Assembly (NCBI GenBank): GCA_002269645.1
Contig: NIVC01005144.1
Span: 1 to 24,873 of the forward strand
DNA: 24,873 bases
Origin: Macrostomum lignano
Taxonomy: Eukaryota
Direction: 5' to 3'
Shown in pieces: positions 972 to 24,473 of the stretch (positions are counted from its first letter, which is position 1; each line of letters opens with the position of its first letter). The notes below the pieces were generated by a model. That model ran no database searches, was not told the origin of the DNA, and worked only from the letters and a program-made list of their open reading frames with translations. The position numbers were made by a program, and so were the translations under genes.

Positions 972-1524
972 ATCTGGGACACGTAGAATCACCGCTTGCT
1001 GGTGCTGCCAAGCGTGGCAGAGGTTGGGTTGCGTTCTGAGGGAGCTGGCTTGGCAAATATAGGCGGGAAGTATTAGGCCCGCGGCTTGGGCGCATTGGGC
1101 TCGGTCGCCAAGGACAACCGGTGTTTTCTAACATAATAACTCTCTTTCCTGTTAGATCGTACCACCAATGGCATTTGACGGATTGTGTTCTTGGACAATG
1201 CTTTCTGTCTACGTTAACCAGATAGATTTACTACTTTCAGTAAAAACTTTTGCACACGCACAGGTATTTTAAGTCTGAGTCAGAAAGTTTAAACCGACTC
1301 GGATCAGCCAATCCGTCATGACCGTTCCTAATCTTGTGGCGGCGGCGTTTTTGATTTACATTAATCCACGCGATCCGAATTCGAACACTGTAAGCCCTGC
1401 TCGATAAATTGAACTGTCTCCTGTTAACTGGACTCCATCCCCGTTAACTTGTACAAGATATGCGCGTAACTTTAGGCCAGGACCGGTTTCTGAGAGTTCC
1501 TACTCTTCATACGAGGTGTTGGGA

Positions 1525-3634: not shown

Positions 3635-4749
3635 TCAGTCTTGCGGGTCCTGGCAGTGCTCGCAGTCTGCCATGGCCTCAACGTATTCCTCGATCTGCAC
3701 AGTGACCTCGTGAAGTTGAAACCGCTGCTTAACCAGCCTTGTGGCCGCCAGCAGCAACTCCTGCTGATTAGCGTCCTTAACAACGGCCAGGTGCGCGCTG
3801 ACGGCCGTTTTGTTCATTGTGAGACTCCACAGGCGCAGGTTGTGCACTTCGATAACGCCTGGCACAGAGGCGAGCGTCTCCTTGACAATGTTGAAGTCCA
3901 AGCCCTTGGGTGTAGCCTCCATCAGCACGCGCATAGTGTCGCGCAAAATGCTGAAAGTGGTGAACAGGACCAGGATGGAGAACAGGAAGGTGCAGATGGG
4001 GTCGGCCAGTTTCAAGTCAGGTCGGTAGTAAATAACAAAGGCCGCACAGAGGACGCCCAGACTCTGCAAGAAGTCGCCAACTACATGAATAAAAGCTGCC
4101 CGAACGTTGATGTTTTGATCTGAATGGCGTGATCATCGTTGCCGTGATTGTTGGCGTGACTGTGACCGTGGTCAGTGCCGAGACTGTGACCGTGCTGATG
4201 CAGCGTCACCGCCATGATGATGTTAACCGCCACACCAACACCGGACGTGATGAGCATAGCCTGGCCTTGAACTTCGAAGTTCTGATTGACAACGCGTTCA
4301 ATTGCCAGGTAAACCAGTATACCGGTGACCACCCAGATCATGAGCACAGAAACCAGGGCCCCGACAACTTCGGCCCGGTGCCAACCGAAGCTCATTCTCT
4401 TCGTGGCCGGCCTGGAGGCCAGGTAGAGCGCCAGCAGGCTAATCATGAAGCTGGCAAAGTCCGTCAGCAGGTGAGCAGCGTCCGTCATGATGGCCAAACT
4501 GTTGGCGATGGCGCCGCCAACGATCTCGCCGGCCATGAAGAGCAGGCAGAGCAGCGAGGCGACCCAGAGCTTGCGCCGGGCCGTGCGCTGGCCGAGCGCC
4601 AGCAGCTGTTCCCTGACCTGCTCGCTGGCGTGGCAGTGCAGCCCGGCCTCGCTGTCCGAGCTGGTGCCCCGCTGCATGGCGTGGTAGGACGGACCGGCGT
4701 GAGACACCAGACTGCTCTTCTCGCTGACATTGGCACCGTGGCTTGGCAT
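3635..4749 (-). CDS. SLC30A2: Zinc transporter ZnT2-like (SLC30A2/3/4/8 group, CDF family); intronless; one -1 frame break at about 4113-4132
   Basis: ARRKLWVASLLC...SLAIMTDAAHLLTDFAS (TM2 zinc site HxxxD), FGWHRAEVVGAL, His-rich loop HGHSLGTDHGHSH. Then, in the -1 frame, NINVRAAFIHVVGDFLQS (TM5 HxxxD), ADPICTFLFS, LMEATPKG, VHNLRLWSLT, TVQIE, CEHCQDP. Confidence 0.93.
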
Positions 4750-6425
4750 TGTGGACACAATAATCAATGTGTGCGCGTGACAACTGCAAAGTTTAATCAT
4801 TAGTAGGGACTTAAAATGTGAAGTTTTGAAGAGGCTATATGCCTATGTTTAATCGGCTTGACCTTCTCACGAACCTTTTTAAACAGCCAATCCGAACAAA
4901 CGCTATGGGGTCTCACTTCATACTCGAGTGTACTTGCATTCAAATTGCTAACAAAGCAATTAACAGATCTGAGAAGCACCTGTGAGGGTCAGGAAAATTA
5001 CTACTGTTATCAAAGCTCTTGCTGATAATCTTTGGCAGAATTATAAATTGCAACACACCCATGCCACGTGACATGAGTTTCTTGTTGGGAAACACTTTTG
5101 AACTATAGTAGAAAGCAAAATAAACATAGAAGTACAATTAAACTGTATGCAAGACTAATGGTAAAGGAGCTTAAGAAAAAAAGATTTTGTGAATTTCTGA
5201 ATAGGCCTAAAAACAATTAGATTTTTTCTTTTTTTCTGAACATGCTCTCATTTTCAACAAATTTGATATTTTTAGACTTGTATTTTATTTTTTTATTTTG
5301 AATAAGTAATTAAGTAGTTCAACTATTAGAAGTTATGAATATAAATATATATATGTAACTTATTTGGCCATAAAAAACTAAGTCATTATTGCTACTTAAA
5401 TAAAATAAAAAATATAAGCAGGAAAAGAGAACAGAAAGAATATTAAAACTCCTAAATTCTAGAAAAAAACTCTACAATAAACTCATTTAAATCCTAGACA
5501 TATTGTGAAAAGTTTCAAATTATTTTTCACTTGAATATAAAAGAAAGTAGCATATAATAGTCCTATTTCTACTCAAAAATAGAAATCAATAATAGGCTTA
5601 TCTGGCTATTAAAAGTATTTTTGAACTATATAAAATAATAATAATGATAAATAAGATTAGACAATATCTTAAACAATGATCTATATCCATTAAAAATATT
5701 AGGGCCTAGGGCTAGGGAGTATAATAACTGGGTCTAATTAAAAATGTTCAAAATATCCAAAAATGCACCCATAATAACAAAGCAATGAACCAAAAAAGGA
5801 TGATTTTTCAAAATTTAATATGGAAATATGGCTACACTAAGCCTTTACTCTGAGCCCAATAAATTTAGACAGCATAGACAGTTAGACCTAATAATGCAAA
5901 AATCATTTTTTGAGAGCTGAAGCAACATGGGTTTACTAGTAAGACAATATTAGTAATAAATTAAGATGCTAATATAGCTGAGTTAAGTAAAGGTTACTAC
6001 CTAAATACCATTGAATAATACAATCTACTTGCTACTTGCACCTATACATTATAATGTTTGAATATGAATATACTTTCGTATGTTTGATTGTTTTATGCAT
6101 ACAGAGGTAAACTAGCAAATAAAGGAAAGAGTTGCAAATAATTACTTAAAAAATAAATAATTCTAAATCAATCAGGCTGTTGGTCTGTAGCAAATGCAAC
6201 AATAACAACTGCAAGTGCTGTTTTTGTTTGCTGCACGCAATTCGTTCGCTTTAGTCCCCGAAACATTTCGAAGAAAATCATTGTTTTAAATTTAGAGTGA
6301 GCATAACATTTTAACAAGTTTCGACGGCATTTACAAGCAATATTACCAGCGGTTCCTATACGTCCCTCCTTGCCTCGTCTCTCCAATTTAAATAATTGCG
6401 TTACATTCCATCTATCTTGATTTCC

Positions 6426-6492
6426 CCAGGCGATACTACATCACTTGTTTATGTACAGTAGCTTTGTTGAGCAGCTGGTCGTATTTTGACCA
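6426..6492. repeat. Direct repeat A, left copy (pairs with 11050-11116)
   Basis: ccaggcgatactacatcacttgtttatgtacagtagc...ttttgacca; 6 mismatches over 67 bp against the right copy. Confidence 0.9.
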
Positions 6493-6499
6493 TTAGTGA

Positions 6500-6628
6500 A
6501 GGGGAGGCAAAGACAAACCGAGTGTGAAGACGGCAAGGCAATGAAAAGCTAGGGGGTGCACCCCAAGTCGGTCAATGGTATTGTTGAAACAAATTGATTA
6601 GAGAGGATTTAAAATTAACGAGAAAAAA
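6500..6628. repeat. Repeat B, copy abutting repeat A
   Basis: gggaggcaaagacaaaccga...aaaagctaggg.gtgcaccccaag...aaaattaacga recurs at 6848-6960. Confidence 0.85.
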
Positions 6629-6847
6629 TTCCAAACGCGAGCAAACCCTTACAGTAGCCGCATAGGTGGCGGCCTTAATAGGCACACGGCATGCACAACG
6701 TACCCAAAAACCCAAGCTGACAGCCAACACCCAAACAGCCCCCAAGAACCACGTATGTAGCTATATACAATGGACCTTGACAGCCCCCTTGCTTGCATTA
6801 AAGGCGCTTAGCCCTCGCCGGCTCGCGCAAACCGATATATTAATTAA

Positions 6848-6960
6848 GGGAGGCAAAGACAAACCGATTGTGGCGACGGTGAGGCAATTAAAAGCTAGGG
6901 GATGCACCCCAAGGCCAAACTAACAAATAAATGAACGAATGAGAAAATTAACGAAAAAAA
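6848..6960. repeat. Repeat B, inner copy
   Basis: Core of about 66 bp strongly similar to 6502-6567, plus the shared aaaattaacga tail. Confidence 0.85.
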
Positions 6961-7071
6961 GGGAAATTAAGGCAGGGGATAAGAGTAGAAATATAAAAAC
7001 CTTGAAATCACGAGTAAAAGTCACTCAAAGGCAATTCTCTCTAAAAAGCGCCAGCAATATGCGAACCAGCT

Positions 7072-7975
7072 TCAGCAGAGAATCTGCATAGGCAGTGGAA
7101 GGTAGGCAGTCACAGCATCACTTCGCCAGTCACCGATGCATTTCACCTCTTAAACAGAGTACCACCTCTGCGCAAGCTGTGCGCTGAGAAAGAACGGTCG
7201 AACGTCCTACCCAACAGTTGCTAGGCAACGCTTGAGGAACCTGTCGAATCTTGAGGCAGACAGGACAATAGAGGATCCGCTCGCCAACTGATTGGAGAAC
7301 ACAGGTTGCCTGCCACCAAGCTTGCTAATGCGGAGGTGACTCTCTAGCGCGGCCACCAGGCAAAGCGGATGCCCTTCTTTTAGCATTGGAAGCAACACTC
7401 GGTGCAGCCTCGCTCCGAACTGGTTCGTTTTGCCATAACTGACGGAGAGCACAACCCTCTTCGGGTGGTATTTAAAGGCTGAGACGGAGATCGCTGAACC
7501 GGATTGCTGGCAGGGCAGGAGACTGTGGAACGCCAAAAAATCCCCCACCAAGAAATCGGCGTCACAAGCCAGCAGACTGTATCAAGCGAACTGCTCGAAT
7601 TAAGTCGGTTCCTCACAGACCGGCAGCTTCTGTCTTGGTCGCTGGCCCAACCTCCGTTTGGCGACGCGAACGAGCAGTCAGACCAGGTGGTTTTTGTTCG
7701 GTCCTCAGCATCATCACAAGTTTTGAACCAGCTGGACAGTGCACTGACGTGGACACGCAGACTGTTGAACGATCTCAGGGGGCATTCGACTAGGTGGTTA
7801 AGTAGCACCGACCAGTCGTATCGAGTCGGGTTGGTCCCGCTCTCGTTGCAATAACTGCGCCAGGACCGGACGGCCGATGAGATTGCCCTGTGTGACTGCG
7901 GTGCGTATGTTGCGGCGAGGAGGCCGGAGGTGGCGGCGCCGAGGGTCTGCGTTGCAGGGAGGCGGCCTGTGAAGA
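7072..7975 (-). pseudogene. Tyrosine recombinase of the YR retrotransposon (frameshifted)
   Basis: N-terminal LAATYAPQSHRAISSAVRSW (integrase SAM-like region), GKTNQFG, LCLVAAL, FSAHSLRRGG (HxxR, 7190-7161), GDWRSDAVTAY (catalytic Tyr at 7104-7102); these lie in different frames. Confidence 0.85.
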
Positions 7976-8094
7976 TAAAAAACAGGAAGCAAAAACAGAA
8001 AACGCGTGATCGGAAAACTCCACAGGGAAATTTGCACCGAGCCAAAAACACAGAAAATAAAACTAAACAACTCATGACATGATTGCAAGCGGGA

Positions 8095-8481
8095 CCCGCA
8101 TCAGAAAACAGCTGATAGGCACCAGGAAAGTGAAAGACCTCAAATTCAACGTCGAAACGCAGACACAGCAGCGTAACAGCCTGCAACAACCACATCAGCC
8201 GCGAGTCCTTGGAGACGCCTCGCCTCAGCATCCAACACGCCGTTTCATTGTCGCAGTCGACAGCCAGCCGACACCCGACCAAGGACTGGGGTCATCTCAA
8301 AACAGCCAGCGAGATAACCACAGCCTCCTTGTAATTGATGCAGTAATCCTGAAAAACAGTGTGAAAAACAATCGTGAAGTGTGGAATCCAAGCAGATTCA
8401 GATGATTGTAGAACTTTTAGCAGGACTCCTGACCTCCACAGAAGGCGAAGTCATCCATGTAGGCCTTCATAGCGTAGAACC
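8095..8481 (-). pseudogene. YR-element RT C-terminal fragment (YMDD) and RNase H
   Basis: FYAMKAYMDDF (YMDD at 8461-8450); INYKEAVVISLAVLR*PQSLVGCRLAVDCDN...SKDSRLMWLL...HFPG (DIRS-type RNase H; TGA at 8294-8292 where W is expected). Confidence 0.8.
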
Positions 8482-9786
8482 TGGCAGGGCTCTGGTGCCG
8501 ACTGTCTGCACTCGCTCACTGTCTGCAGTGACGATCCACAGTCCCAGCTGATCCATGAGGTCGCACCCCAGGATGTCAGATCCGGTATTGACCACGCTAA
8601 GGTTGACGTAAGGCACTACTTTGTCCTTGAGCTGCACCGAGGTCAGGATGTCACCAAGCACGCCGATCTTGCTGCCGTTGAAAGCGACCAGCTTCCGTGA
8701 TGACGCCTGCAGGGGCACGTTGGACAGAAGTCTATTGTACGTCGTCTTGGTGATGATGGAGACTCGCGAACCGGAGTCAACGAGCAGCTTGACAGGCCTC
8801 CCGTTCAGCAGCACTTCGCAGTGCTTGCTTGCTGCCGCAGCTGTCGACACAGTGCAAATGGAGTACTCATCCTGAAGCTGTCGCACTCCGTTGCCGCTCC
8901 TGCAGACTCTGGCGAAGTGCCCGCGCTTGCCGCAGGACTTGCACTTCTGCCCCTTTGCTGGGCAGGTCTGTCCACCGACATGCGCCGCTGAGCCACAGTA
9001 GCCGCAGCTCCGGCCGTCGGTTGTCGGCTTCAGTGCCTCGTGCTGTCTTGCCACTGCTCTACTGTTCTTAGCCTTGCTGATCTGCTGGACTCCACACGAG
9101 CTGTTTGGGTCTGTGTGGCTGCCTCCCTTGATGGCCTGGGCCTCCAGCAGTCCAGTTTCCAGTCGCTCCGCCAACTGCACAGCTGTCGCCAAGGTCAGCT
9201 CCGGCTCCATAAGCAGTCGCTCCCTGATGTGGTTGCTGAGCACTTTCTCGACGAGCTGGTCACGCAGCATCTCCTCCTGGAAGGTCTTGAAGTCGCAGTT
9301 CGAAGCCAGGTTTCGCAGCGCGGCAACGAAGTCCCTGATCTTCTCGCCCGGTCGCTGAGCTCTCTGTCGGAATCTGTGCCTCTCAGCAACTACGTTGACT
9401 TTGGGTCCGAAGTGCGTGTCCAGGAGCTTCAGCGTGTCATCAACTGTTGATGGCGGATGCTCTTCTTCCTCCTGATTGCGACTGGCCTGCAGAGACATGT
9501 AGATGTTTTGTCCCTCTGCACCCAAGCAGTGGATGAGCAACGCTTGTTTTCTTTGCTCCGGCAGATCGATGGCTCCCGATGCTAGCAGGTAATTGCTGAA
9601 CATTGCTTTCCATCGGTTCCATTCAATCAGCGATGCTCCAGCGGCTGGCAGAAACGGCTGCGGTGGCGAAATGTTGACACTCATTCTGTTGGCTGTAACT
9701 CTGCTTGACTGTTGGGCTGCTGCTTGTTGGGACCCTCGCTGTGGGTCGCCCATTGCACTTGCATTTGCGCCTTCTGTGCTGCTCAT
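8482..9786 (-). CDS. Gypsy gag plus aspartic protease, open but 3'-truncated
   Basis: EWNRWKAMFSNYL, ALLIHCLG, ERHRFRQRAQRPGE, EMLRDQL, CKSCGKRGHFARVC zinc knuckle, LLVDSGSRVS protease site, ILGCDLM; runs into host sequence and stops at 8467. Confidence 0.88.
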
Positions 9787-9850
9787 GACTTGGCAGATTT
9801 TAGAGTTTGCGCTTTTGCTGAATCACGCTGGCCCAAATCAATTTATTTCT

Positions 9851-9863
9851 CCGCGCGACGCCA
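9851..9863 (-). promoter_or_regulatory. Primer-binding site of the Gypsy element
   Basis: TGGCGTCGCGCGG begins 3 nt after the LTR-terminal CA; the TGG complements the tRNA CCA end; cognate tRNA not assigned. Confidence 0.7.
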
Positions 9864-9866
9864 AAA

Positions 9867-10064
9867 TGTGGTGAGCGAGAGACAAGCCAGTCAGGTTTAG
9901 TCCAACAAACAAAATTCAAACCCTCACCTAAAGGGTGGAGCTATTCTTATATTTACTCGAGAACGCATGTACATATACAAACAGAGCGAGCATGTACATC
10001 GGATCCCTTGACCCCCAAACACCGACTAGCAAAACAACCCAGTGAGTAAACTCACTTTACAACA
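9867..10064 (-). repeat. 5' LTR of the Gypsy element (about 198 bp)
   Basis: Starts TGTTGTAAAG and ends ...CTCACCACA on the - strand; TATA-like TATAAG inside; followed by the PBS. Confidence 0.75.
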
Positions 10065-10634
10065 GAACCCAGGCTTCAATGGCTGGCTGGCCCTCGCCTT
10101 GGAGCTGAATCTTCATGCCTGTGACCCGGTGGTCATCTGGGTGCACTCCAAATGAACGGTACGATACAAGTCCACTTTGCACATATACGCGCCGCTATAC
10201 AGCTTCAAGGCAAAGTTGCTGGCAGATGTAAAACGCAACTTCCGTTTCGACTCGAAGAAATCATTGACTGAGGTGCGAGTTGGCAGGCTGCAGCCGTGAA
10301 TAAGGCGGATGGAAGACGAGTCCACCTTAGGGATCGCACCAAGTGCACTTAAAATTAGCGGCCGATTGCCTGCCTGACAGCGCCTGTAGAGGTCCTGCTC
10401 AAGCTCCTGATGCACTTGGGCCTCAACAGCTTGTTGTTGAATAGTAGCTGATCTGTGATTCGCCATTTCAGTGTGGTTCTTATAATCCATCACCTTATTA
10501 GTAATACGGAAGCCATTCTTCACACCATCGAGCTCGAACCTGACCCGGTCCTCCAGCATCTCGGTCCCAGCCAGCTCTTCCCGCCAAACCGCAAAGACAA
10601 GGTCGCTCGACAACTCTGTTGAACTGGGGGTCAC
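10065..10634 (-). pseudogene. YR-element reverse transcriptase, N-terminal part
   Basis: GVKNGFRI, NHRSA, SALGAIPK, RLIHGCS.P..SVND, MCKVDL, then frameshifted YRSFGVHPDDHRVTG; the LPFG motif is missing. Confidence 0.85.
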
Positions 10635-10721
10635 TTAAGGGAGAGATCCCCCGTGGGGCACAGGAGGGTGACCCGGAGCTAGACCTTGAGTCCTGTGCCC
10701 CCACCTCACACGCTAGTTTTT

Positions 10722-10943
10722 TTAAAGTTGGCCCGAGTCTTCATCAGCGTATGCTCGGGCCTCGGAGTGCGGCTGTGAGCACCTGCGGCACTGATGAGTT
10801 CTGTTGCAGCCGCTGAGACTGTTGAAGTCGAAACAGACCGGTGGCTGCGTTCGCTTTTTAGGCGCTCTTGCATTTATCAATTTGTTGGTGCCATCAAGTG
10901 TGTTGCCACCAGACGCTGACAGCACTCCACCGCATTCCGTCAT
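10722..10943 (-). pseudogene. YR-element gag remnant with Cys/His finger
   Basis: PVCFDFNSLSGCNRTHQCRRCSQPH resembles Ngaro/DIRS ORF1 fingers and sits upstream of RT. Confidence 0.65.
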
Positions 10944-11049
10944 GCTGGAAAATCTCGAGAAGCCCTCAAGGACTACTACTACTCTTTGAACGTATGTACG
11001 CTCGTATGTCCATTCTCTCTAAGCGATTGCGCCAATCCCTAGCAAGACT

Positions 11050-11116
11050 CCAGGTGATCCTACATCACTTGTTTATGTACAGTAGCTCTGTTGAGCAACT
11101 GGTGGTATTTTGGCCA
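11050..11116. repeat. Direct repeat A, right copy (5' end of the YR element)
   Basis: 61/67 identical to 6426-6492. Confidence 0.9.
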
Positions 11117-13253
11117 GTATTCAACAAAGATACAGAATAAAAATCTACCTTTTTTGTCATTGTTCATGAATCACGAGTATGAGTACTAGCAGCAAAGTAG
11201 TTTTCAAAAGGAACGCGACTTTCTGCTCTCTCTTTAAACTTCTATCATTTCCTAGAAAGAGCAGCGTTGCTGACTGCACACCTACAGTTATGATCTGGAG
11301 AGGTGCACCACAAGGTGCATTTGTTTCCCAAGGATTTGTACGAGAGATGGAGATGGGATCTACCGAGTGTATTGGTGTATTGGTAGACTGACAGAAACAG
11401 GACGAAATCGTTTCTGTCAGTTGCACCACATGCATTGCTTATTTATGCACTTCAATCCGTGATGGATCACATGGGAGTCTGCGCCAAGAACGTACTGCCT
11501 GCCAGATACCCCAATATGGTAAAAAGACGCCGTTTTTTGTACCAAAAGACTCGCCTTTGGTTTTGTCATGGTTTCACCGTTTTGCCCAGTGCAAAGTCAA
11601 GGTAAAATCTTATGCTACTGAAATAGAATTATATGCGTGCTGCTTATGCAACGCTTGTATTCTGGATTAATTACTTTTTTAATATTTTACACACACTGGA
11701 TAGGCGTCTTGGTCTTCCTACTCAGTTTTCAGCCAGCACGATAGGTCTGGTTACAGCTGGATGCTATAATTAAACGCTGCAAAAAACTCAGAGGTATCAG
11801 TTAAAACCGAGTTTTCCTCTTTTATGAGAAGCATTGTAGGAGCAATTGGCAATGCAGGGTCTGGAGATTTCGGATCCCATAATGTTTTTTGTTGCTAGAC
11901 GAGTTGAAGCTAGCTCTGGATTCCCCGACAGCCCATAGATATTGCATTTCTACTATTCTAAAGTCGGCATTAACCTACCTGATCAGGTCATACATTTGAG
12001 CATTTAAACATTTCTGAGCATCTATATTCTACATTTGAACACTCCTTCCATGACCTCACCAGCGCACTCTACGACTCCAACTCGTAGGAAGGGAGGAAGG
12101 ATGTTGGCACGAAGCCCGACGCTCAGGAGGTCACTCGTTCTGGTTTTTTTAAATTGGGTACTGATTATTCAGGAGGATGTATGTGCAGCCTTCTATCCGA
12201 TACAGATGCAAACATCCAATGATGCGTGCTGTCGATGATATCAGCCAGACGGTGCGAACAATATTGGCCATTATAGCTAGTAACGAAGCCACTTTCTGGG
12301 TGGAAAACCTTTTGTTAAAGTGTCTACAAGAAACAATTGGAAACTCTGGCACTCAATCTTTCAGGCTGTGAATAAAAAATAAAGGAAAAGTGGACTTAAT
12401 TTTGTAAAATAGTGAACTGCAAAAATCCAGATCTGCACGTCTGGTTTACTAGTCCTAGCAGACATCCGATTTCTGCCGCCCTTGATGACAACATTATAGG
12501 TTTCTTAGTGATTTAGCCGACTCAATCGACCAATCTCAGTGTGGTAAAGGACGCGCGCGCAATCGAACTATCACATTGGAGACGAAATTAGCAATTGTTC
12601 ATCTCTTTGCGTGGCATGGTAGATTTCTGCTCGGAAATTCTACTCAATTGGTGTTTCCTACATCCTTACGTCTAGAGTGGTGGGAATTAGTTCATATCTA
12701 AGGAGCAGGTATTACTGAGTACACGGCTTATGTTCTGTTCGCCACAATCGCTGAGCACTTTTTCCCATCTATATTAATTACAACATTAAAAATGCTTCTC
12801 GATACGTTCTCTTTAGGACTCGTAAAGAAACGATCAAAAGTAGCCCAATCATCTGTTACGATGCAAGATAGTAAAGCAAAGAAGCTCATGTACACCTGAG
12901 TGTTTTGTTTCTCTCAAGATATGTTCATGTGATTATCTGCATAAGCACGAAACTCCAGACGCAGTTATTTAATTAAAATTTCAAAAATACGTTAGCATAG
13001 ATCCTTATACATTCTGGAACTGTAGTACTCTAGATCTCTAGTTCTGGTCTGGTCAAATCTGTTAATTCTCAAACCGGATTTTCAACAGGTACCCATCACT
13101 ATGGCATCCACAGAGACTTGCTGAGCATACTGTTCACTTCATCCTATGCAACATGCAAAAGCTTGCGACGGGCTAGCTGCCTAACTCGCTGATACGAGCT
13201 AGTATGCGTCCGAAACGAATACTAGCAGACTGGTAATGCTAGGCTTTGAATTG

Positions 13254-13343: not shown

Positions 13344-13603
13344 TTATTAAGTAAAATCAAGCAGTGACTCCCCCGATAAAATGGCAGTCAAATGGCTGGA
13401 CACTATTGCTCAGCATAAATTAATTTACCAATGGGAATTTCCACTTCCGGCGAGTGTATTGGCTGCTGAGCACGCTGTCCAATGACAGTCAAGCCAGGCG
13501 CTTTTAAAAATCCTTGAATACCTTGTCCTGCTCTGTCTTCGCTGTCAACTTCATTATATTTTGCATCGCACTTAGACAGGGACGGAAATCTCCTCTCGAA
13601 GTC

Positions 13604-13780
13604 ATGCAGGTGCAGCACGACTCCAACGATTCCACTATCGCAGGTCAGTCGAGCCCGGCGAATCTCGGGCCTGTGCAGCAGTCATTGCTGGGCATTCTCA
13701 TGCTCAGCCTGAGCCTGCTAACGTCAGCCGGTAACGCACTGGTTTTGCACGCAGTCAGAACTGACAAGCGATTGCAGACT
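13604..13780 (+). CDS. HRH1: Histamine H1-like GPCR, exon 1 (N-terminus, TM1)
   Basis: MQVQHDSNDS...LSLLTSAGNALVLHAVRTDKRLQT; GTGAGC donor at 13781, phase 0. Confidence 0.88.
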
Positions 13781-13945
13781 GTGAGCTTTCGTGTTTGTAA
13801 AAATTACCAGCATACAGTTTATTATTTATTCTCACGTGCCTAGTGTGACCAAACAGCTTATCCATTTGTAAGGAAAACACATTCATTCGGTCGGGTTTGT
13901 GCTCAAGACCTAAGTAACTAAACGTAGCTAAAGTAGAAAAGTATA

Positions 13946-14405
13946 GCAGTTGAATGGCTGGCAGTTGAATGGCTGGCAGTTGAATGGCTGGCAGTTGAAT
14001 GGCTGGCAGATGAATGGCTGGCAGTTGAATGGCTGGCAGTTGAATGGCTGGCAGTTGAATGGCTGGCAGATGAATGGCTGGCAGTTGAATGGCTGGCAGT
14101 TGAATGGCTGGCAGTTGAATGGCTGGCAGATGAATGGCTGGCAGTTGAATGGCTGGCAGATGAATGGCTGGCAGTTGAATGGCTGGCTGTCAAATGGCTG
14201 GCAGTTGAAAGGCTGACTGTCAAATGGCTGGCAGTTGAATGGCTGGCAGTTGAATGGCTGGCAGTTGAATGGCTAGCAGTTGAATGGCTAGCAGTTGAAT
14301 GGCTGGCAGTTGAATGGCTGGCAGTTGAATGGCTGGCAGTTGAATGGCTAGCAGTTGAATGGCTAGCAGTTGAATGGCTGGCAGTTGAATGGCTGGCAGT
14401 TGAAT
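13946..14405. repeat. 15-bp minisatellite (GCAGTTGAATGGCTG), about 30 copies, in GPCR intron 1
   Basis: Direct reading; the GCAGAT variant recurs every 60 bp in the left half. Confidence 0.97.
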
Positions 14406-14734
14406 TTCATTGTCAAAATAGCATCTCGTAAGCCAGCAATATTAGCTTCTTAGACAAAATATGACTTACCGAATAATATTTTCCGCTTGACCGCGATGAC
14501 TTCCAGTAATCAGTTTTTACGAGTATCTATAAGAGCCGCAATAGCTGATTGAAGACTCCTTTAAACTCAGAGTTTTCAGACAAGGAGGATGAATTCAGCT
14601 TTTAAAAAATCCTCTGTGCTACACTCCTTTATCCCGATTTCATTTTGCGAGTAAAATGGAACCCCTTGCTGCAATAGGCCAGGGGTGTTGTCTTGCGAAT
14701 CACACTAATGAGGACCAACCCCCAAGGCACAGAG

Positions 14735-14903
14735 AGTGTACATGCCCGACGATTAGAGAGTCAGGGCCCCTGTGTGAGAGTGTGCCTGCGAGTGATGTGC
14801 TCAGGAGCCAGCGGAACGGGCAGAGTTGCCGTCAGCGCTGGTTGTGGGATGATGTCGTCGAAGTCGTTGGCGCCAGGTTGGCCGCAGCCCTCCTGCGAAT
14901 ATT
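14735..14903 (+). repeat. Dispersed structured repeat, copy 1 (candidate ncRNA or SINE-like element)
   Basis: About 70% similar by eye to 23414-23622; stems conserved through compensatory changes. Confidence 0.7.
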
Positions 14904-16801
14904 TATAATAGGACTGTGTGAACTTTAAAAATGAGCGCGGGAGTAGAGATGCTATTCTTGGTTGAGTCGGTACTTTGCGTGTTCATAAAACAGTCAGAAC
15001 ATACAAACGTAAAAAATTCTATATTTCTAGAATTTTGAATTGGTTCTGTTTAATCTGAAGCTTTTGAAAGTGCTACTTCCATTTCAATTAATTGATACAG
15101 ACAAAAGACTGTTTTCTAATCCACAAAGTCGCCCTTCGCTTTGAAAAAAATTGACTATACACTTGAAATTTTCTGATCCTGCCTCCGCCTCCTCATCCTG
15201 AAGAGATTAGGAGCCCTCTCATCCCGAAGGGTTTTGTCTAACATTGAGACGCACGCGAGAACAAATCCAGGATCACGTGAACACGTGAAAAGGTTAAAAT
15301 AAATTAAAGAGTTGACGTCAGCGCTGGTGCCGTGAGACGAAGTGGCCATCATTACCATTAGCAAATTCATGCAGAGCAAAGACACCTTTTCTGTTCCTAA
15401 AAAAACTTCAGGGCAACCATTTTTCGCCAGTAGCAAATGATTCACTCGCTTGGCCGGCAAGCAGCTGGCGGAGCCAGAGAGAATTCTATTGGGAGAAGCA
15501 GCTGTCTCACAGGCTGGTGGTGTTAAATTATTGACGAGGCCAAGGTTTCCGGTAACGCGGGAATATTCAAGTATCGGATCTGATAATCAATAGTGCATGC
15601 CTTCTCTGCTTGAGTTTATCAAGACTTTTCAATTCTGACTTGATTCCGCGGCTGTCTGTCACTCCGTAACTCGTCACAGACAGTCAGTAAGCTTTGCATT
15701 GCACAGCGAAGTGTGGTCAAAACTATACGGTTCCCGAGATTAATAATTAATATAGATAAAATTATTCACAAATTTTTACTGTCAACTCACCGAATCGCCA
15801 CATAAATTACTGAGCTCTGTATTAGCCAAGTGAAAGAAATAATTTCAAGGCCGACATTTCACGTCTTGTCGACTGATTGCGTGATGGTTCAATCTGATTA
15901 CTCCCAAAGCGGAGAGGTAATTAGATCACGCTACAGCTGGGTGAATCTAGTGGGCATCCCAGACTGATTTAAAAGAGGCCAGATCAACAGAATAGAACAA
16001 AAACAGGTTGCTCTGCTCTCTTTGCCCTGTGGTGATGAAATGACCGCAGTCACTTCCAGTTCACAAGCGGCAACTGTGCTAGATATTGTTTCATTTCATT
16101 GCTTGGTAACCAGTTATAGCAAGGTTGCGAATAAGGTGCTCGCGGCTCGCTATAGGGCCGTGATTCAGCACACAAAATTGCTAAATGGTTTTGCGAAAAA
16201 ATTCAATTTCACGACACGGTCGCTTGATAAATGACTTTGACTCTCAGCTCAGTTATTGATCAGTTTTTTTCGGCGCTTAAAAGGGACTGTTTCAGCTGAT
16301 TTCATTCCAGCAATTGCACTGCATTAACGGCATTCATTTTGAAAAGCAAAATGAAGATTTGCTGTTAATTGAAGTAGAAGTAGAACACATTTGGCTATCA
16401 AAGGTATTTTCGTGTACGCTCTCTAGCTACGAGTATATCATACGAGGATAAACAACCCGTGCTCAGATGAGGGTCAATATTTTAGCCATAATTGATATTT
16501 TCCCCAGCTTCTGCTGTTCCAAGGATCATTTGAAGCCAGTACGCGCCTGGTCCAGGGTGGTTTCACCAGTTTATGGACTTTGATTTCGGACAAATACTAT
16601 ATTGGAGACTGGCAGTGAAGCAAAATGAAAGCTTTTCTCATCTGCATGATACGTTTTTCTAAACAGATAATTCTAGTCTGAAGGTTGAGAAACCATTTCT
16701 GCTAAAAAACCAATCGAAAAAGGTTGCATTAAACAATAATTCATTCGTTAACAGAATCATCAATTAACATTCGGTCAAACACATTAGCCACTTGCAAGTA
16801 T

Positions 16802-17479
<678 letters not shown>

Positions 17480-18460
17480 AATTTGGTCTTTAAATGGTCT
17501 TCACAACTTTCAAGGTGCTACGCTATCGTTACCAGAACTATAATTTATAGGAAGATTACTCCTACGAGCCAGCGCATGCCCTGAATCGATTGAGCAGACG
17601 GACACGGTTGGCAGGAGCTCAGCTAGTGCGCGCAACTCCCACGCGCAGCCTTGCCTAATGGCTCGCAGTCAATTCAAACCAACAACTTGAAGCTCTCAAC
17701 AGTGAAAGATGAGTGCAGGCGGGATGCTGTGCACGGAAACGTTTTCTATGTCGGCGTCCGCTTGGCACCCGAGCTCGCGAACCGGACAAAACAAGACCGG
17801 ACGCTAAAGCGAGATGGAGCTAAGCTTTCAGGGACGCGGGTTATTTAGCGTATGGGAGTCTGCAGTCAATGGATTAAGTGCAAGGGCAGTATTAACTATT
17901 GCTCAGGGAGGGGCTGACTCAGACTGCAATAGATAACTTGAATTAAGTGAGTTTTTAAAAACTCAACCACTATTTCAAATGTGCAACTGAATTTGATTAA
18001 GATGCCAAAAGTACATTTAAATGCAAGTTTCTGTCTTATCATTATCATATAAATAATAATTTCGACATAGAGCTCTAGTAGAGAAATAATTGATCCGCTG
18101 GAGCCCAACTTTGTCTGAAAGTGGGTGGAGAATCAGGCGACTCGCAAAAGTAATTGACTGGGCCCGCGCCCCATCGCTGATCTCGTCAGAAATCCCAGTC
18201 CGGAGCCGACATGCCTATGGGCCACTATTTATAGTTTAACTTCTTCTTTTCTGACTCGGAATAACTTCTCCTCTCAACGCATAGATTATGCCAAGATGAG
18301 ACAGTAGGACCCGGCAGTTGGATCGATAAGAACTGGCTACTTCAGAAAGTTCAGCTGGCGAAGTACTGAAAAGTACTCGTCATAATGGAAAATTACATTT
18401 AAGCTTAATCTCTAATTTCTCTGCGAATGGCACAGGCGTACGTCTTGGCCTTAATTTCAG

Positions 18461-18558
18461 GTGTGCAACATGTTCATTGTCTCTCTGGCCTCCGCGGATT
18501 TTATTGTTGGCGCATTTGTAATGCCAGTGTCGGCCGTGTACGTGCTGTCAGGCAGGTG
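18461..18558 (+). CDS. HRH1: Histamine H1-like GPCR, exon 2 (TM2)
   Basis: tttcag acceptor; VCNMFIVSLASADFIVGAFVMPVSAVYVLSGR; GTAAGT donor, phase 2. Confidence 0.9.
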
Positions 18559-18807
18559 GTAAGTGAAACAGCGTATTGGCGAGGCTGCGGAGATGATCGG
18601 TTTGGTAAATATGTCGTTTAGGCAAAATTTTTGGTTGGAACTTAAATGTAATAAAAGTATATCTCGAGATAGTTAATATCACGTATAGCATAGTTTCGAC
18701 CTTTTAGCTTGCATGTTTAGCCGTGTGAACAAAAAATGTTAGACAGCTCTATTTGAAGTCTCCTCATGTCCAATTTAATACTGAGCTGCTTTGCAAACAA
18801 TTTCAAG

Positions 18808-19045
18808 GCGATTCGGCCGCGCCTTGTGCCAAGTGTGGCTGTCTCTTGACTACACGGCTAGCACGGCATCGATTTTGAACCTGCTAATCCTCAGTCTGGA
18901 CCGCTATTGGTCTGTGACGGCGCCTCTGCGGTACCTGCCCAAGCGCACCAGGAGCCGGGCGCGGCTAATGATAGCTGGCGTGTGGGCCACCTCGGGCCTG
19001 TGGATTGTGCCGATCTTCTGCTGGCACTGGATGGCCAGTCACGGG
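18808..19045 (+). CDS. HRH1: Histamine H1-like GPCR, exon 3 (TM3-TM4)
   Basis: (W)RFGRALCQVWLSLDYTASTASILNLLILSLDRYWSV..PLRY; D3.32 and DRY; tttcaag acceptor; the donor (GTGTGT) is less certain. Confidence 0.9.
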
Positions 19046-19466
19046 GTGTGTTTTCTTTCTCTGATTAAATGATAGAGCTGTGGTAAATTAGGAGTTTTCT
19101 CTGACAGTTTGCCGCTGCTCCCGAACGTAGACATGGCAACTCTGCTGCATGTCTTTCGTCTCCTAAGAAGTATTAGCTAATTCTTTGCGTCGTTGGCTGA
19201 CTAGGAACAATAATTAATTTAGACAGCAGAACTCGCTGAATCACGGTTGTCTCAAAATGAGAGCAGTGTTACAAGGTGCCCCTTGAGAGCATAACCTAGG
19301 CCACTCTGCCGATCAACGGCAGCAGCAGCAACTCGTGCAAGAGCTGTGTAGGCAATGCGCGGATGTAATATAGCTTTTTGCAGCCCATTTTGGCCTACGT
19401 GCATTGATACGTTTGCCAATGCAACGAAGCTTTGTCTATGGTAGCAAGGCTGGCACAGCGGCATTT

Positions 19467-19732
19467 AATTTGGTCCAACAAGCATCAATTTGGTCCAACA
19501 AGAGTCAATTTGGTCCAACAAGCATCAATTTGGTGCAACAAGAGTCAATTTGGTCCAACAAGCATCAATTTGGTCCAACCAGCATCAATTTGGTGCAGCA
19601 AGAGTCAATTTGGTCCAACAAGAGTCAATTTGGTCCAACAAGAGTCAATTTGGTCCAACAAGAGTCAATTTGGTCCAACAAGAGTTAATTTGGTCCAACA
19701 AGAGTCAATTTGGTCCAACAAGCTTTGGACCA
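19467..19732. repeat. 20-bp tandem array (AATTTGGTCCAACAAGAGTC/GCATC), 13 copies, ending in an inverted half-unit; GPCR intron 3
   Basis: tggtccaaca starts every 20 bp from 19471 to 19711; ttggacca at 19725-19732. Confidence 0.95.
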
Positions 19733-20242
19733 CCAAGCAAACGTATCTTGGATTAAACTAAATGCGCGTAAGCCCAAATGGGCTGCAAAAAGCTACACTA
19801 CTGCCTTTGACGATCTAAAAAAGACTCCATTTGTTCCCCAACAAAGCAACACGAGCAATGTGGTCATAGACTACGACCGTTTAAGCCATAGGCTATAGAG
19901 AATTGAGATTATGTTGACTAAGCGTTAACGGTCATCTGTTGGAATTGATGGAGTCATAAAAGCCTACAATTTAAGTTCAGACTGAGGGACTCGTTCTCGT
20001 ACTGATAGGCTGCGTCCCATAGGCGTACTCATTCATGTTGCAATATTATGCACGGTTTTTGACGGAAACCCAAATTCCCGAAGACTAATAGGAGCCACTC
20101 TGGCGGGCAACTTACTTTGCAGTCGTCAGTAGATTCTTCAGTAAATTGATGTCTCCACTGACTTAGGGTACATGACCGTTCTGCTCGTGGTATGTTCCCT
20201 TGCATCATTTTCCAACATTCAAAATCTTCCAACTCCTGTCAG

Positions 20243-20518
20243 ATCCACACGATCCCGATAAGCGAGTGCGATCCAGAATACAAGGAGAGCTTCCCGCTGA
20301 AAATTGTGACTGGCTTGCTTAACTTCTACATCCCGTTATCGGTGATGTACGTCTTGTACGGCCGGATTTTCCAAGAAATTCGCAAGCGCTCCAAGCTCGA
20401 GAAGCAGAGCGGCAGAGGGCGCTCCGGCGCCAATGAGCCGCTCATCAGGCAGCCGAACCAGCGGGACCGACAAAGCGACAGGAGAGGTCGACCACCTGTA
20501 AATAATGATAGTGGGCAG
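20243..20518 (+). CDS. HRH1: Histamine H1-like GPCR, exon 4 (ECL2, TM5, start of ICL3)
   Basis: ctgtcag acceptor; IHTIPISECDPEYKESFPLKIVTGLLNFYIPLSVMYVLYGRIF; CAG/GTAAGA donor. Confidence 0.9.
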
Positions 20519-21390
20519 GTAAGAAAAGTCGTTTGTAATTGTTGTTTCACGATATAACTCATGCCTCTCAGTGCGCTTTTGGCGCCTGCTTGGACGGCAG
20601 AGTTCATATATTTATTATCAATGCTCATGCGCTCCAAAACCATTTTTTTGCCAGGAAAGATGCATTCACGGTGAAGTTTTTCTTCAAGCCTCAGCTGAGA
20701 TAAAGGCTCATGCATTGACTCCTTCTCATTTTAAAGCACCAAAAATTATCAAAAGCCTTCCAATCATTCTTCGAAATTTGAAGCTAGCCAGAGTCCAGGA
20801 GTGGAATTTGCTCATCTAACTCCCATAACCCCCTGCGGTGCGTGAGCTGAGCAGCCAGAGATTTCGATCCGTCAGCGAGAGAAGTATCAGGCCAAGACTT
20901 GAAGAGGATCCTGTCGGAATTAAGCCGCCGGAGGGGCGTCTATAAAGCTTCCGGTTCGATGGGTTGAAAAAGTACAACATGCAATTGATAACCGCACTTG
21001 GCTGTCAGGAAAATTCCAACCTCAGTATTTATTTTTGAATCCATGGAGACTCAAGCATTCGTTTTGGCTGATCTGTTCGAATCTAAACAGAGTTTCGGTT
21101 GGCAAACAACAAGTCAAAAAAGCATTCTATGAGAAGTGCATATAATGTTTACACGTAAGCATTAGCTTAAAAGATAGGCACCTTATTTTTGTTCTAGCTA
21201 CCAACAAAAGCTATTCAATTTTTTCCGTCTGAGCATTGAGCCAGGTCTATTCAGCAGAGATTCTCTCAGTTCTTGAACAGTACATACATAGTCAGTCAGC
21301 TGTAAATGAAACACTATTACACTTTCAATGCGCATAACAAAATAGCAGAGACTTAAAAATAGCAAAATAGCGATATCCATCCCTTTTCAG

Positions 21391-22035
21391 GTTACGTTTC
21401 GCTTCAGCCGCTCTGCAGCTGCCGTCACAGTCACCGTGGCCGGTGACCAATCGTCACCCCAGCGGACGCCCTCACCTGTAGGCGAGTCAATGGCGTCGCT
21501 AGGCAACGGGCCGTCATCGCAGCCGACAATGGAAGTGGCTGCTGAGGACGCGGATGGCAATGACGTCACCTCGACTAACCGAGCTGAGGCTGGTCGTGGC
21601 GACCTGTTGGTTCTGCTGCGAAGACTGCGCAACAGCCAGACAGTCCGCTGGCCACGATTCAGGCTGAGCAGCTCCCTGCAGAAGGAGGTGAAAGCGGCAA
21701 AGCAGCTTGGCGTCATCATGGGCGCCTTCACCGCCTGCTTCCTGCCCTACTTTGTGCTCTTCGTGGTCGTTGCCTTCTGCCCCGACTGCGTCAGCGACAG
21801 CCTCATGCTGGTTGCAACGTGGATCGGGTACGCGAACTCCACCTTCAACCCGGTACTTTACCCGCTGTGCAATCATGCGTTCAGGCGGAAGTTCCGCAGC
21901 ATGCTGTGCTGCGGCAGGCGCAGAGACGCTGAGCTTGAGGCCACCCGCGCCCTCTACCAGAGGGGTCGGGCCACCTTCGGCGCCGCCGCCGCTGTTGTGG
22001 CTGTCAACCGTCGGGCTCTGGATGGGCCTCAGTAA
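21391..22035 (+). CDS. HRH1: Histamine H1-like GPCR, exon 5 (ICL3, TM6, TM7, C-tail, stop)
   Basis: ttttcag acceptor in frame; KEVKAAKQLGVIMGAF, CFLPYF, WIGYANSTFNPVLYPLCN closely match HRH1 KAAKQLG...WLGYINSTLNPLIYPLCN. Confidence 0.93.
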   Translation, partial: VTFRFSRSAAAVTVTVAGDQSSPQRTPSPVGESMASLGNGPSSQPTMEVAAEDADGNDVTSTNRAEAGRGDLLVLLRRLRNSQTVRWPRFRLSSSLQKEVKAAKQLGVIMGAFTACFLPYFVLFVVVAFCPDCVSDSLMLVATWIGYANSTFNPVLYPLCNHAFRRKFRSMLCCGRRRDAELEATRALYQRGRATFGAAAAVVAVNRRALDGPQ

Positions 22036-23413: not shown

Positions 23414-23622
23414 AGTGTGCATGCCTAACGATAAAAAAAGTTAGGGCCACTGTACACTCCTGTGTGAGTGTGTGTCTGTGCGTATGACTGCGTACGTATC
23501 CGCGCGCTTGTGTGCCTGCTCAGGGGAGTCGGCGGAATAGGCAGTAATGCCTCTCGCCGGTTGTGTGACAATGTCGCTTAAAGTGCGCCAGGGTGCACAC
23601 AGCCCCTGCCTGTAAAATGTTT
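23414..23622 (+). repeat. Dispersed structured repeat, copy 2, followed by a T-run
   Basis: Shares tgctcagg, gcggaa, ggttgtg, atgtcg, gcgccagg and cagccc blocks with 14735-14903. Confidence 0.7.
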
Positions 23623-24473
23623 TTTGAAATTTAAAAATCTATAGTCGAATTTTTTCCAAATCCCAATGAAATATTCTTAATAAAGGGTAATAAATCAACT
23701 TGACTGCATCAACACCTGGGGAGATAAGAAACTTTCAGAGAAAGCTTCACCTGCATGGTGAGTCAACTCATTTTTGTATAAATTTACATCATTTCGAATC
23801 AGCACATGGGCGGAATTTTAAATTGAATGATCGCTAGACTAACGCCTGTGTACGCAAGAGCTCAGGGATGCACTGAAACTACTAAACCATACGATTAAGT
23901 TAATCCTCCGCTGGCTTAGACACTACGGCAGAATGCAGTCGAAATCGATTTTGTTTGCTCATATAGTCACGCATCCTGAAGAGGATGAGGCGATAACGAA
24001 GGGGATTTCTTTAAGTGGCCACCGCAGGCTTTGTTTGGAGCCGGTGCGACCGCGCGAGTGCGACACCCCTGCGAGTTGTTTACACAGACCAAATAAAATG
24101 AGAAATGGGGGACTCACTTTAGCACCAGAGCTGGCTGCGATGGATAGCAAACACTTTCCGTGTTGAAATTCCAATGAAAGGTGACGAAATGCATTTTTCA
24201 CTTCATGACCAAGGCCAATTTTGATGTTTAGTCCACTCAGAAAATGCCACTCAGATGAAACTGTATAATTTATAACCATTATTTTGAACTTCTGATCTTT
24301 CGAGCAAGCTACCGTAATTCTGTGACTTTAAATAATCGAGCTGAACTCTTGTTACAAAATTATAGCAGAAAAATTCCTGATAAATGTATTCAAAACTTTG
24401 ACTGAGCCGGAATGAATGCGTCTCAAATCATAAACTTAACGGCGCTTGAAAAGAGAAAGCCGCGATCCAGATT

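Follow-up and report, generated by a model that had tools for sequence, protein, structure and literature searches.

A diverged repeat pair of Macrostomum lignano with a common 3′-domain RNA fold: probable decayed LINE tails

In contig NIVC01005144.1 of the Macrostomum lignano genome (assembly GCA_002269645.1), analysed at its whole length of 24,873 nt and referred to here as the window, two diverged repeat copies, A and B, keep in their 3′ half a common fold of the + strand beyond chance. The fold of the repeat is probably real, and with moderate confidence the two copies are regarded as decayed LINE-tail copies, the fold of which was selected in the mobile element. Most likely, the pair is ordinary mobile-element debris and not a new host RNA gene.

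Copies A and B and their surroundings in the contig

The two sequences are homologues on the same strand, and together with a third, short fragment they comprise the following features outside the fold.

14735..14932, + strand: copy A, full homologous stretch according to alignments
23414..23638, + strand: copy B, full homologous stretch according to alignments
14744..14767, + strand: stem A hairpin of copy A (GCCCGAC..GTCAGGGC), with its equivalent in copy B at 23423-23447 and one G-C to A-T double change
14892..14932, + strand: A+T-rich tail 3′ of the fold in copy A, according to blastn and gapped alignment
23607-23638, + strand: A+T-rich tail 3′ of the fold in copy B
15308..15343, + strand: third fragment, 36 nt, similar to 14822-14855 (3′ strand of helices 3 and 2)

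The pair had been reported in a preliminary description as same-orientation copies of a candidate structured RNA, and the coordinates and letters given there were all exact, with each named stem in its place. True homology was confirmed by a Smith-Waterman score of 52.5, compared with 10.4±1.8 (maximum 17) for shuffled sequences, and by blastn, which aligned 14798-14932 with 23517-23638 (E=2.7e-8) and 14735-14795 with 23414-23487 (E=0.004). Identity varied with the gaps permitted from 66% over 163 aligned columns of the MAFFT alignment, in which the 55 mismatches were divided into 33 transitions and 22 transversions, to 79% over 184 columns of a gap-rich optimal alignment. The likeness extended slightly 3′ of the limits drawn earlier, to positions ~14932 and ~23638, where both copies end in the common TTTAAAAAT. 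In the A+T-rich tails, similarity stopped at the common GAAnTTTAAAAAT, 30-40 nt 3′ of the fold, and this end of the tail is presumed to be the 3′ terminus of the element. Outside the ca. 200 nt of homology the flanks had nothing in common. Both copies form G+C-rich islands, with a GC content of 0.60 in copy A (flanks 0.36-0.41) and 0.54 in copy B (flanks 0.36-0.40). Copy B has two inserts of its own, of ~10 nt and 25-31 nt, including the hairpin to which its low folding z-score is in part owed.

The third fragment scored 21 against 14822-14855 (null 9.0±1.4) and was found in the paralogous locus L033 as well. Within it, 15308-15328 holds a perfect TGACGTCA palindrome, which is CRE-like; the corresponding sequence in copy A is TGCCGTCA, and copy B has nothing similar. 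No further copies were found in the window by nhmmer, and the known copies and the scrap are all on one strand and within 9 kb.

Besides the repeat, the contig contains a zinc-transporter gene (- strand), a tyrosine-recombinase retroelement remnant, and an unannotated gene (+ strand) for an aminergic-type G-protein-coupled receptor (GPCR). The first GPCR intron holds copy A in sense orientation. Copy B is located ~1.4 kb past the GPCR stop codon (22035), likewise sense to the gene, and the single annotated gene of the contig is 18.6 kb away from it. The exons of the GPCR gene and the open reading frames of the retroelement remnant, the domains of which were named by eye, are:

13514-13843, + strand: GPCR exon 1, TM1
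~18440-18580, + strand: GPCR exon 2, TM2
18791-19072, + strand: GPCR exon 3
20192-20557, + strand: GPCR exon 4
21436-22035, + strand: GPCR exon 5
7207-8282, - strand: tyrosine-recombinase-like ORF of the retroelement remnant
8467-9786, - strand: gag/CCHC/aspartic-protease ORF of the retroelement remnant
10113-10634, - strand: reverse-transcriptase-like ORF of the retroelement remnant

The GPCR gene shows the DRY motif LDRYWSV and NPVLYPLCNHAFRRKF. Its last exon is carried by no M. lignano protein on record, and the best database relatives of this exon were 51-73% identical over part of the length. In intron 1, a 15-nt unit (GCAGTTGAATGGCTG) is repeated 31 times at 13946-14405, ending 330 nt 5′ of copy A, and (TAGA) is repeated 160 times at 16831-17468. 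At 19365-19801, also in a GPCR intron, inverted repeats of 41 nt (88% complementary) surround a tandem array of 13 units of 20 nt, an arrangement reminiscent of foldback or MITE-like elements. The retroelement remnant (~6426-11124, - strand) is bounded by direct repeats of 70-75 nt with 88-90% identity (6426-6500, 11050-11124); a database search with its gag-protease ORF gave no close relatives, and the stretch 8481-10064 of the window, i.e. most of the gag ORF, is missing from the loci L031-L033.

The SLC30A2-like zinc transporter (3635-4800, - strand) has a 1-nt deletion near 4128 in comparison with the intact, single-exon L031 paralogue of 381 amino acids. The deletion results in two ORFs, and the annotated product has just 232 amino acids; a zinc-transporter query was 95% identical to the M. 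lignano protein PAA47743.1. This copy is either pseudogenised and redundant, or its deletion is a long-read indel error.

A common fold of the 3′ domain and its drift in duplicate loci

The 3′ part of both copies was folded into a Y-shaped domain, in which two hairpins are closed by a further helix.

14803..14891, + strand: Y-shaped 3′ domain of copy A, consensus fold, covariance-model score 120.5 bits
23524..23606, + strand: Y-shaped 3′ domain of copy B, minimum free energy structure identical to the fold (z=-2.71), covariance-model score 96 bits
Helix 1, closing the fold: 14803-05/14889-91 in A, 23524-26/23604-06 in B
Helix 2, stem B of the preliminary description: 14809-13/14836-40 in A, 23530-34/23555-59 in B
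Helix 3, inner hairpin of the preliminary description: 14819-22/14827-30 in A, 23540-43/23548-51 in B
Helix 4: 14841-47/14882-88 in A, 23560-66/23597-603 in B
Helix 5, copy A: 14853-54 and 14856-58 with 14870-72 and 14874-75
Helix 5, copy B: 23572-73 and 23575-77 with 23585-87 and 23589-90

Between helices 2 and 3 there is an internal loop, the 5′ strand of which reads GCGGAAYRGGC. Helix 4 follows directly 3′ of helix 2, with the letters GTTGTGG/CCGCAGC in copy A and GTTGTGT/ACACAGC in copy B, and its variable apical part is formed by helix 5. When compared with column shuffles, the consensus fold of the 3′ domain had a z-score of -4.0 (0 of 500 shuffles as good), and with the same substitutions placed at random, z-scores of -4.7 and -5.0 (0 of 400). 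With re-alignment the values were -2.8 to -3.2, the nulls including one in which only the mismatch pattern was rotated. On the minus strand the fold reached just -1.3 to -2.2; the + strand scores above it because of conserved G-U pairs. The folding energy of copy A on its own was ordinary (z=-0.39 overall and -0.10 for the 3′ half).

The stems named earlier, i.e. stem A, stem B, the inner GGCA/TGCC hairpin and the terminal hairpin, do pair, and double changes between G-C and A-T were seen. As evidence for selection, the compensatory changes did not hold: RNAalifold counted 4 such pairs, the shuffle mean being 3.6 and 49% of shuffles having at least 4, and in a better alignment 2-3 were observed with 0.5-1.5 expected (P=0.08-0.27). 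Nor did the blocks claimed as invariant stand out, as the longest identical run was 10 nt, at or below the chance expectation that we calculated by our own arithmetic for 66-79% identity. Stem A pairs as described but gained no statistical support, the z-scores of the 5′ domain ranging from +0.6 to -1.0; in the paralogue L033, a T at 14747 makes it a perfect CCTGAC/GTCAGG. The terminal hairpin can pair, but it is outcompeted by the better-supported helix GTTGTGG/CCGCAGC, which uses the same bases and has its equivalent in copy B as well as in the LINE untranslated region described below.

More than half of the M. lignano genome is repetitive, and the assembly is highly redundant, with 180 Mb of non-repetitive blocks at least 95% identical owing to duplicated large chromosomes (PMC5730564). 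Three near-identical duplicate loci holding copy A (L031, L032 and L033) were reached through members of the zinc-transporter cluster; L031 and L032 had identical variant sites over the copy A region, and a 4-nt insertion in addition. Copy A differs from its duplicates at 3.0-3.6 substitutions per 100 nt, compared with 2.0-2.8 in the 1.6 kb of surrounding intron. Four of the 10 distinct substitutions fell on paired positions (4.7 expected), and of these four, three break a pair, one creates a wobble pair and none is compensated. The pair-breaking A to T change at 14810 strikes a pair that had been described as covarying. With a rate of change no lower than that of its intronic flanks and with substitutions that break stem pairs, copy A is without present constraint and is drifting neutrally. 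Of the proposed selection on an RNA fold, the fold shared by the 3′ domains stood against the null models, but the resident copy A is not under selection.

Searches for relatives and the 3′ untranslated region of a LINE

The fold of the 3′ domain was cast into a covariance model (R1), which was searched with filters off against ~140 kb of M. lignano loci. Besides copy A, its duplicates and copy B, a single outlier was obtained at 1404-1475 (- strand) of the locus L037, with 17.3 bits and an E-value of ~0.007-0.012, the next-best match having 10.9 bits. The outlier falls within the 98-nt 3′ untranslated region (UTR) of a full-length LINE, in the sense direction.

L037 1390-7289, - strand: full-length LINE in contig NIVC01001304.1, with a 13-nt target-site duplication

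Both ORF1 and ORF2 (1139 amino acids) of this element are open, and ORF2 contains the domains Exo_endo_phos_2 (endonuclease), RVT_1 and RNase_H. The LINE is present in one of three duplicates; as it is missing from the duplicate loci L034 and L036, the insertion is recent and points to LINEs that have lately been, or still are, active in M. lignano. The match begins 12 nt past the stop codon and stops ~15 nt short of the end of the element, where two TAAGTCAA(A)G repeats follow, and the LINE terminates 23 nt past helix 1.

Folded alone, the LINE UTR gave identical minimum free energy and centroid structures with the same architecture as in A and B: a closing helix CAGGG/CCCUG, a hairpin UAGCGG-[GAAUG]-GGCG-CCCG-CGCC-CCGCUG, and an adjoining hairpin UGUCCC/GGGACA. 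The unpaired GCGGAAYRGGC and the closing CAGCCC are common to the LINE UTR, A and B. When the LINE was added as a further row, 98.2% of the cells paired, five pairs were changed on both sides, and none of 500 shuffles was equal, in an alignment that is fitted to the model and leans to structure. Homology to the 3′UTR of an element encoding endonuclease and reverse transcriptase was accordingly found at the level of structure, with marginal similarity by sequence alone, which for copy A had z=2.2-2.4 (P ~0.03) and for copy B was not significant. The link to the LINE thereby rests on one covariance-model match with a rough E-value and on its position, and the L037 element is to be seen as a relative, not as the parent.

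The LINE is from the same species as A and B and agrees with them in the architecture of the 3′ domain, in both motifs and in strand sense. It differs in having a 6-nt loop in place of helix 5 and in its TAAGTCAAAG repeats, which the tails of A and B do not resemble. The extra 5′ part of A and B, consisting of stem A and a GT-rich linker, is lacking from the L037 UTR, and no counterpart to the 5′ 70-100 nt of the copies was found in the element.

The non-redundant M. lignano sequence examined amounted to ~80 kb, from loci reached via protein look-ups, and no further copies were found in the ~55 kb of it lying outside the window. Likewise, a broader model (R2) including the LINE row produced no additional copies in ~160 kb. 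The DNA pattern CGCYGGTTGTGKGAYRATGTCG had no matches in viral contigs, and all 28 matches of the pattern CGCNGGTTGTGNGANNATGTCG in metagenome contigs were dismissed as chance, being in bacterial contigs of 55-73% G+C and without extension.

When the window was searched with the L037 ORF2 by tblastn, no ORF2 remnant was detected near A or B, and BLASTP comparison of the upstream ORFs with the ORF2 C-terminus gave nothing; this absence would agree with a non-autonomous derivative or with copies truncated to a very short length. A putative relic of a CCHC zinc knuckle, located upstream of both copies and by eye similar to the C-terminus of the LINE ORF2, was rejected as neither BLASTP nor tblastn supported it. 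No convincing target-site duplications were found for either copy, and at the divergence of A and B they would mostly be erased; when checked as the preliminary description had proposed, copy A showed as its only repeat the 7-mer TGCGAAT at 14694 and 14894, and copy B had nothing comparable.

Several other classes of elements were considered and set aside. A MITE or DNA transposon was rejected as neither A nor B has an inverted repeat between its ends and target-site duplications were not found, and a SINE with a Pol III-type head (tRNA, 5S, 7SL) as ARAGORN found no tRNA in the window and Rfam gave no match. In Rfam 15, which covers snRNA, snoRNA, SRP and ribozymes such as hammerhead, HDV and twister, no family reached the gathering score over the window, and around either copy the matches were at chance level (E≥2.8). 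The earlier suggestions of an ncRNA gene, a SINE core or a ribozyme found no support in the Rfam and tRNA searches. By eye, none of the snoRNA C/D and H/ACA boxes, the Sm site, the Pol III A/B boxes or a Helitron-type end was conserved between A and B, and no T-run terminator was seen after copy A. A protein-coding exon or pseudogene was discarded as well, because copy B has stops in all frames and frameshifts, and mismatches are even over codon phases. The 90-aa ORF across copy A had no Pfam match, and among 1.84 billion representative proteins it returned one marginal, repetitive match (E=7.9e-4).

Origin of the repeat and its meaning for Macrostomum lignano

In the reading that we favour, A, B and the 36-nt scrap at 15308 would be old copies of the 3′-terminal part of a M. 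lignano non-LTR (LINE) family, either as 5′-truncated LINE insertions or as a short non-autonomous derivative bearing the same tail. We infer the descent of A and B from such a LINE, and also that the fold serves recognition by reverse transcriptase: as happens in stringent-type LINEs, the enzyme of the element itself would recognise the 3′UTR stem-loop on the transcript and proceed to target-primed reverse transcription, so that the fold would be selected in active, transcribed master elements. Differences between master sub-lineages would then appear compensatory, and each copy would drift neutrally after its insertion. A fold selected in the masters and followed by decay would explain why the differences between A and B preserve structure and why the + strand is favoured, why homology ends 30-40 nt past the fold, and why a G+C island is followed by an A+T tail and the duplicates drift neutrally. 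Of the possibilities named in the preliminary description, the evidence favours a retroelement cis-element, the same architecture being present in the 3′UTR of an intact LINE.

Comparable systems are known. A stringent-type LINE has a 3′ tail with a stem-loop that is recognised by its ORF2 protein, and the tail also occurs in partner SINEs (PMC4176376, PMC1636434). As in A and B, the stringent LINEs and SINEs of eel (UnaL2/UnaSINE1) and zebrafish (ZfL2-1, ZfL2-2) carry structured RNA right at the 3′ end, with an internal-loop hairpin followed by a short tail, and in the eel and zebrafish LINE tails, too, the fold is kept while the sequence drifts and short dispersed copies contain the tail only (PMC1636434, PMC4176376). 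The fold of A and B differs as a two-hairpin Y closed by a third helix, when the UnaL2/ZfL2 type is a single hairpin, and unlike in tail-sharing LINE/SINE pairs, no tail repeat is common to A/B and the L037 LINE. With its RNase H domain, the L037 LINE presumably belongs to a different clade from the L2-type examples. SINEs with conserved central domains (CORE, V, Deu and similar) resemble A and B in that internal blocks are kept among short copies that are dispersed and have diverged, whereas no tRNA-, 5S- or 7SL-derived head was detected in A or B. To our knowledge, A and B match no known SINE core.

It is possible, although rather improbable, that A and B represent an undescribed short, SINE-like non-autonomous family of Macrostomum, which would parasitise RNase-H-bearing LINEs via the shared Y-shaped 3′ domain. 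If so, this would be the first flatworm LINE/partner pair defined by a three-helix tail.

The repeat might also be a functionless, ancient local duplication in the GPCR locus, in which palindromic hairpins were inherited and the resemblance to the LINE 3′UTR is coincidental. Just two copies and a scrap are known, all within 9 kb on one strand, and the ~55 kb of other M. lignano DNA added none; the lack of target-site duplications, the chance-level compensatory count, the neutral evolution in the paralogues and the weak sequence-only similarity to the LINE UTR all fit such an origin. We nevertheless consider it unlikely, as the flanks share nothing past ~200 nt, the fold surpasses three null models on one strand only, and the sole outlier of the model fell exactly in a LINE 3′UTR, in the sense direction and with an architecture predicted independently. 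Less credence still is given to a structured RNA functional in the host and maintained by selection for its fold, either as two paralogous genes for small ncRNAs or as elements acting in cis within the GPCR pre-mRNA and 3′ region. The fold signal of the + strand with its G-U asymmetry, the sense orientation of both copies to the GPCR gene, and their G+C-rich composition within A+T-richer flanks agree with such a function, but there was no Rfam family even at E≤10 and no tRNA, no Pol III boxes, T-run terminator of copy A or conserved snoRNA boxes were seen by eye, the folding energy of copy A is ordinary, and copy A changes at a rate equal to or above that of the surrounding intron, with pair-breaking changes in the duplicates.

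Finally, the Watson-Crick palindromes of which the stems consist form on the minus strand too, and a perfect TGACGTCA is present in the 15308 scrap, as could be expected if duplicated palindromic binding sites for protein (e.g. CCTGAC-N9-GTCAGG, GGCA-N4-TGCC) had been kept at the level of DNA and not of RNA. This explanation is very improbable, since the + strand clearly outscores the minus strand via conserved G-U pairs, the palindromes are struck by substitutions in the paralogues, and TGACGTCA is not common to A or B.

Macrostomum lignano is a model for transgenesis and regeneration, and its repeats hamper genome assembly and annotation. With decayed LINE tails as the preferred origin of A and B, the pair calls for caution, as a diverged repeat pair with "compensatory" differences can be mistaken for a new structured RNA although selection on its fold took place in a mobile element and not in the host. 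With its GCGGAAYRGGC loop, the Y-shaped domain is a concrete candidate signal for recognition by the reverse transcriptase of LINEs in M. lignano.
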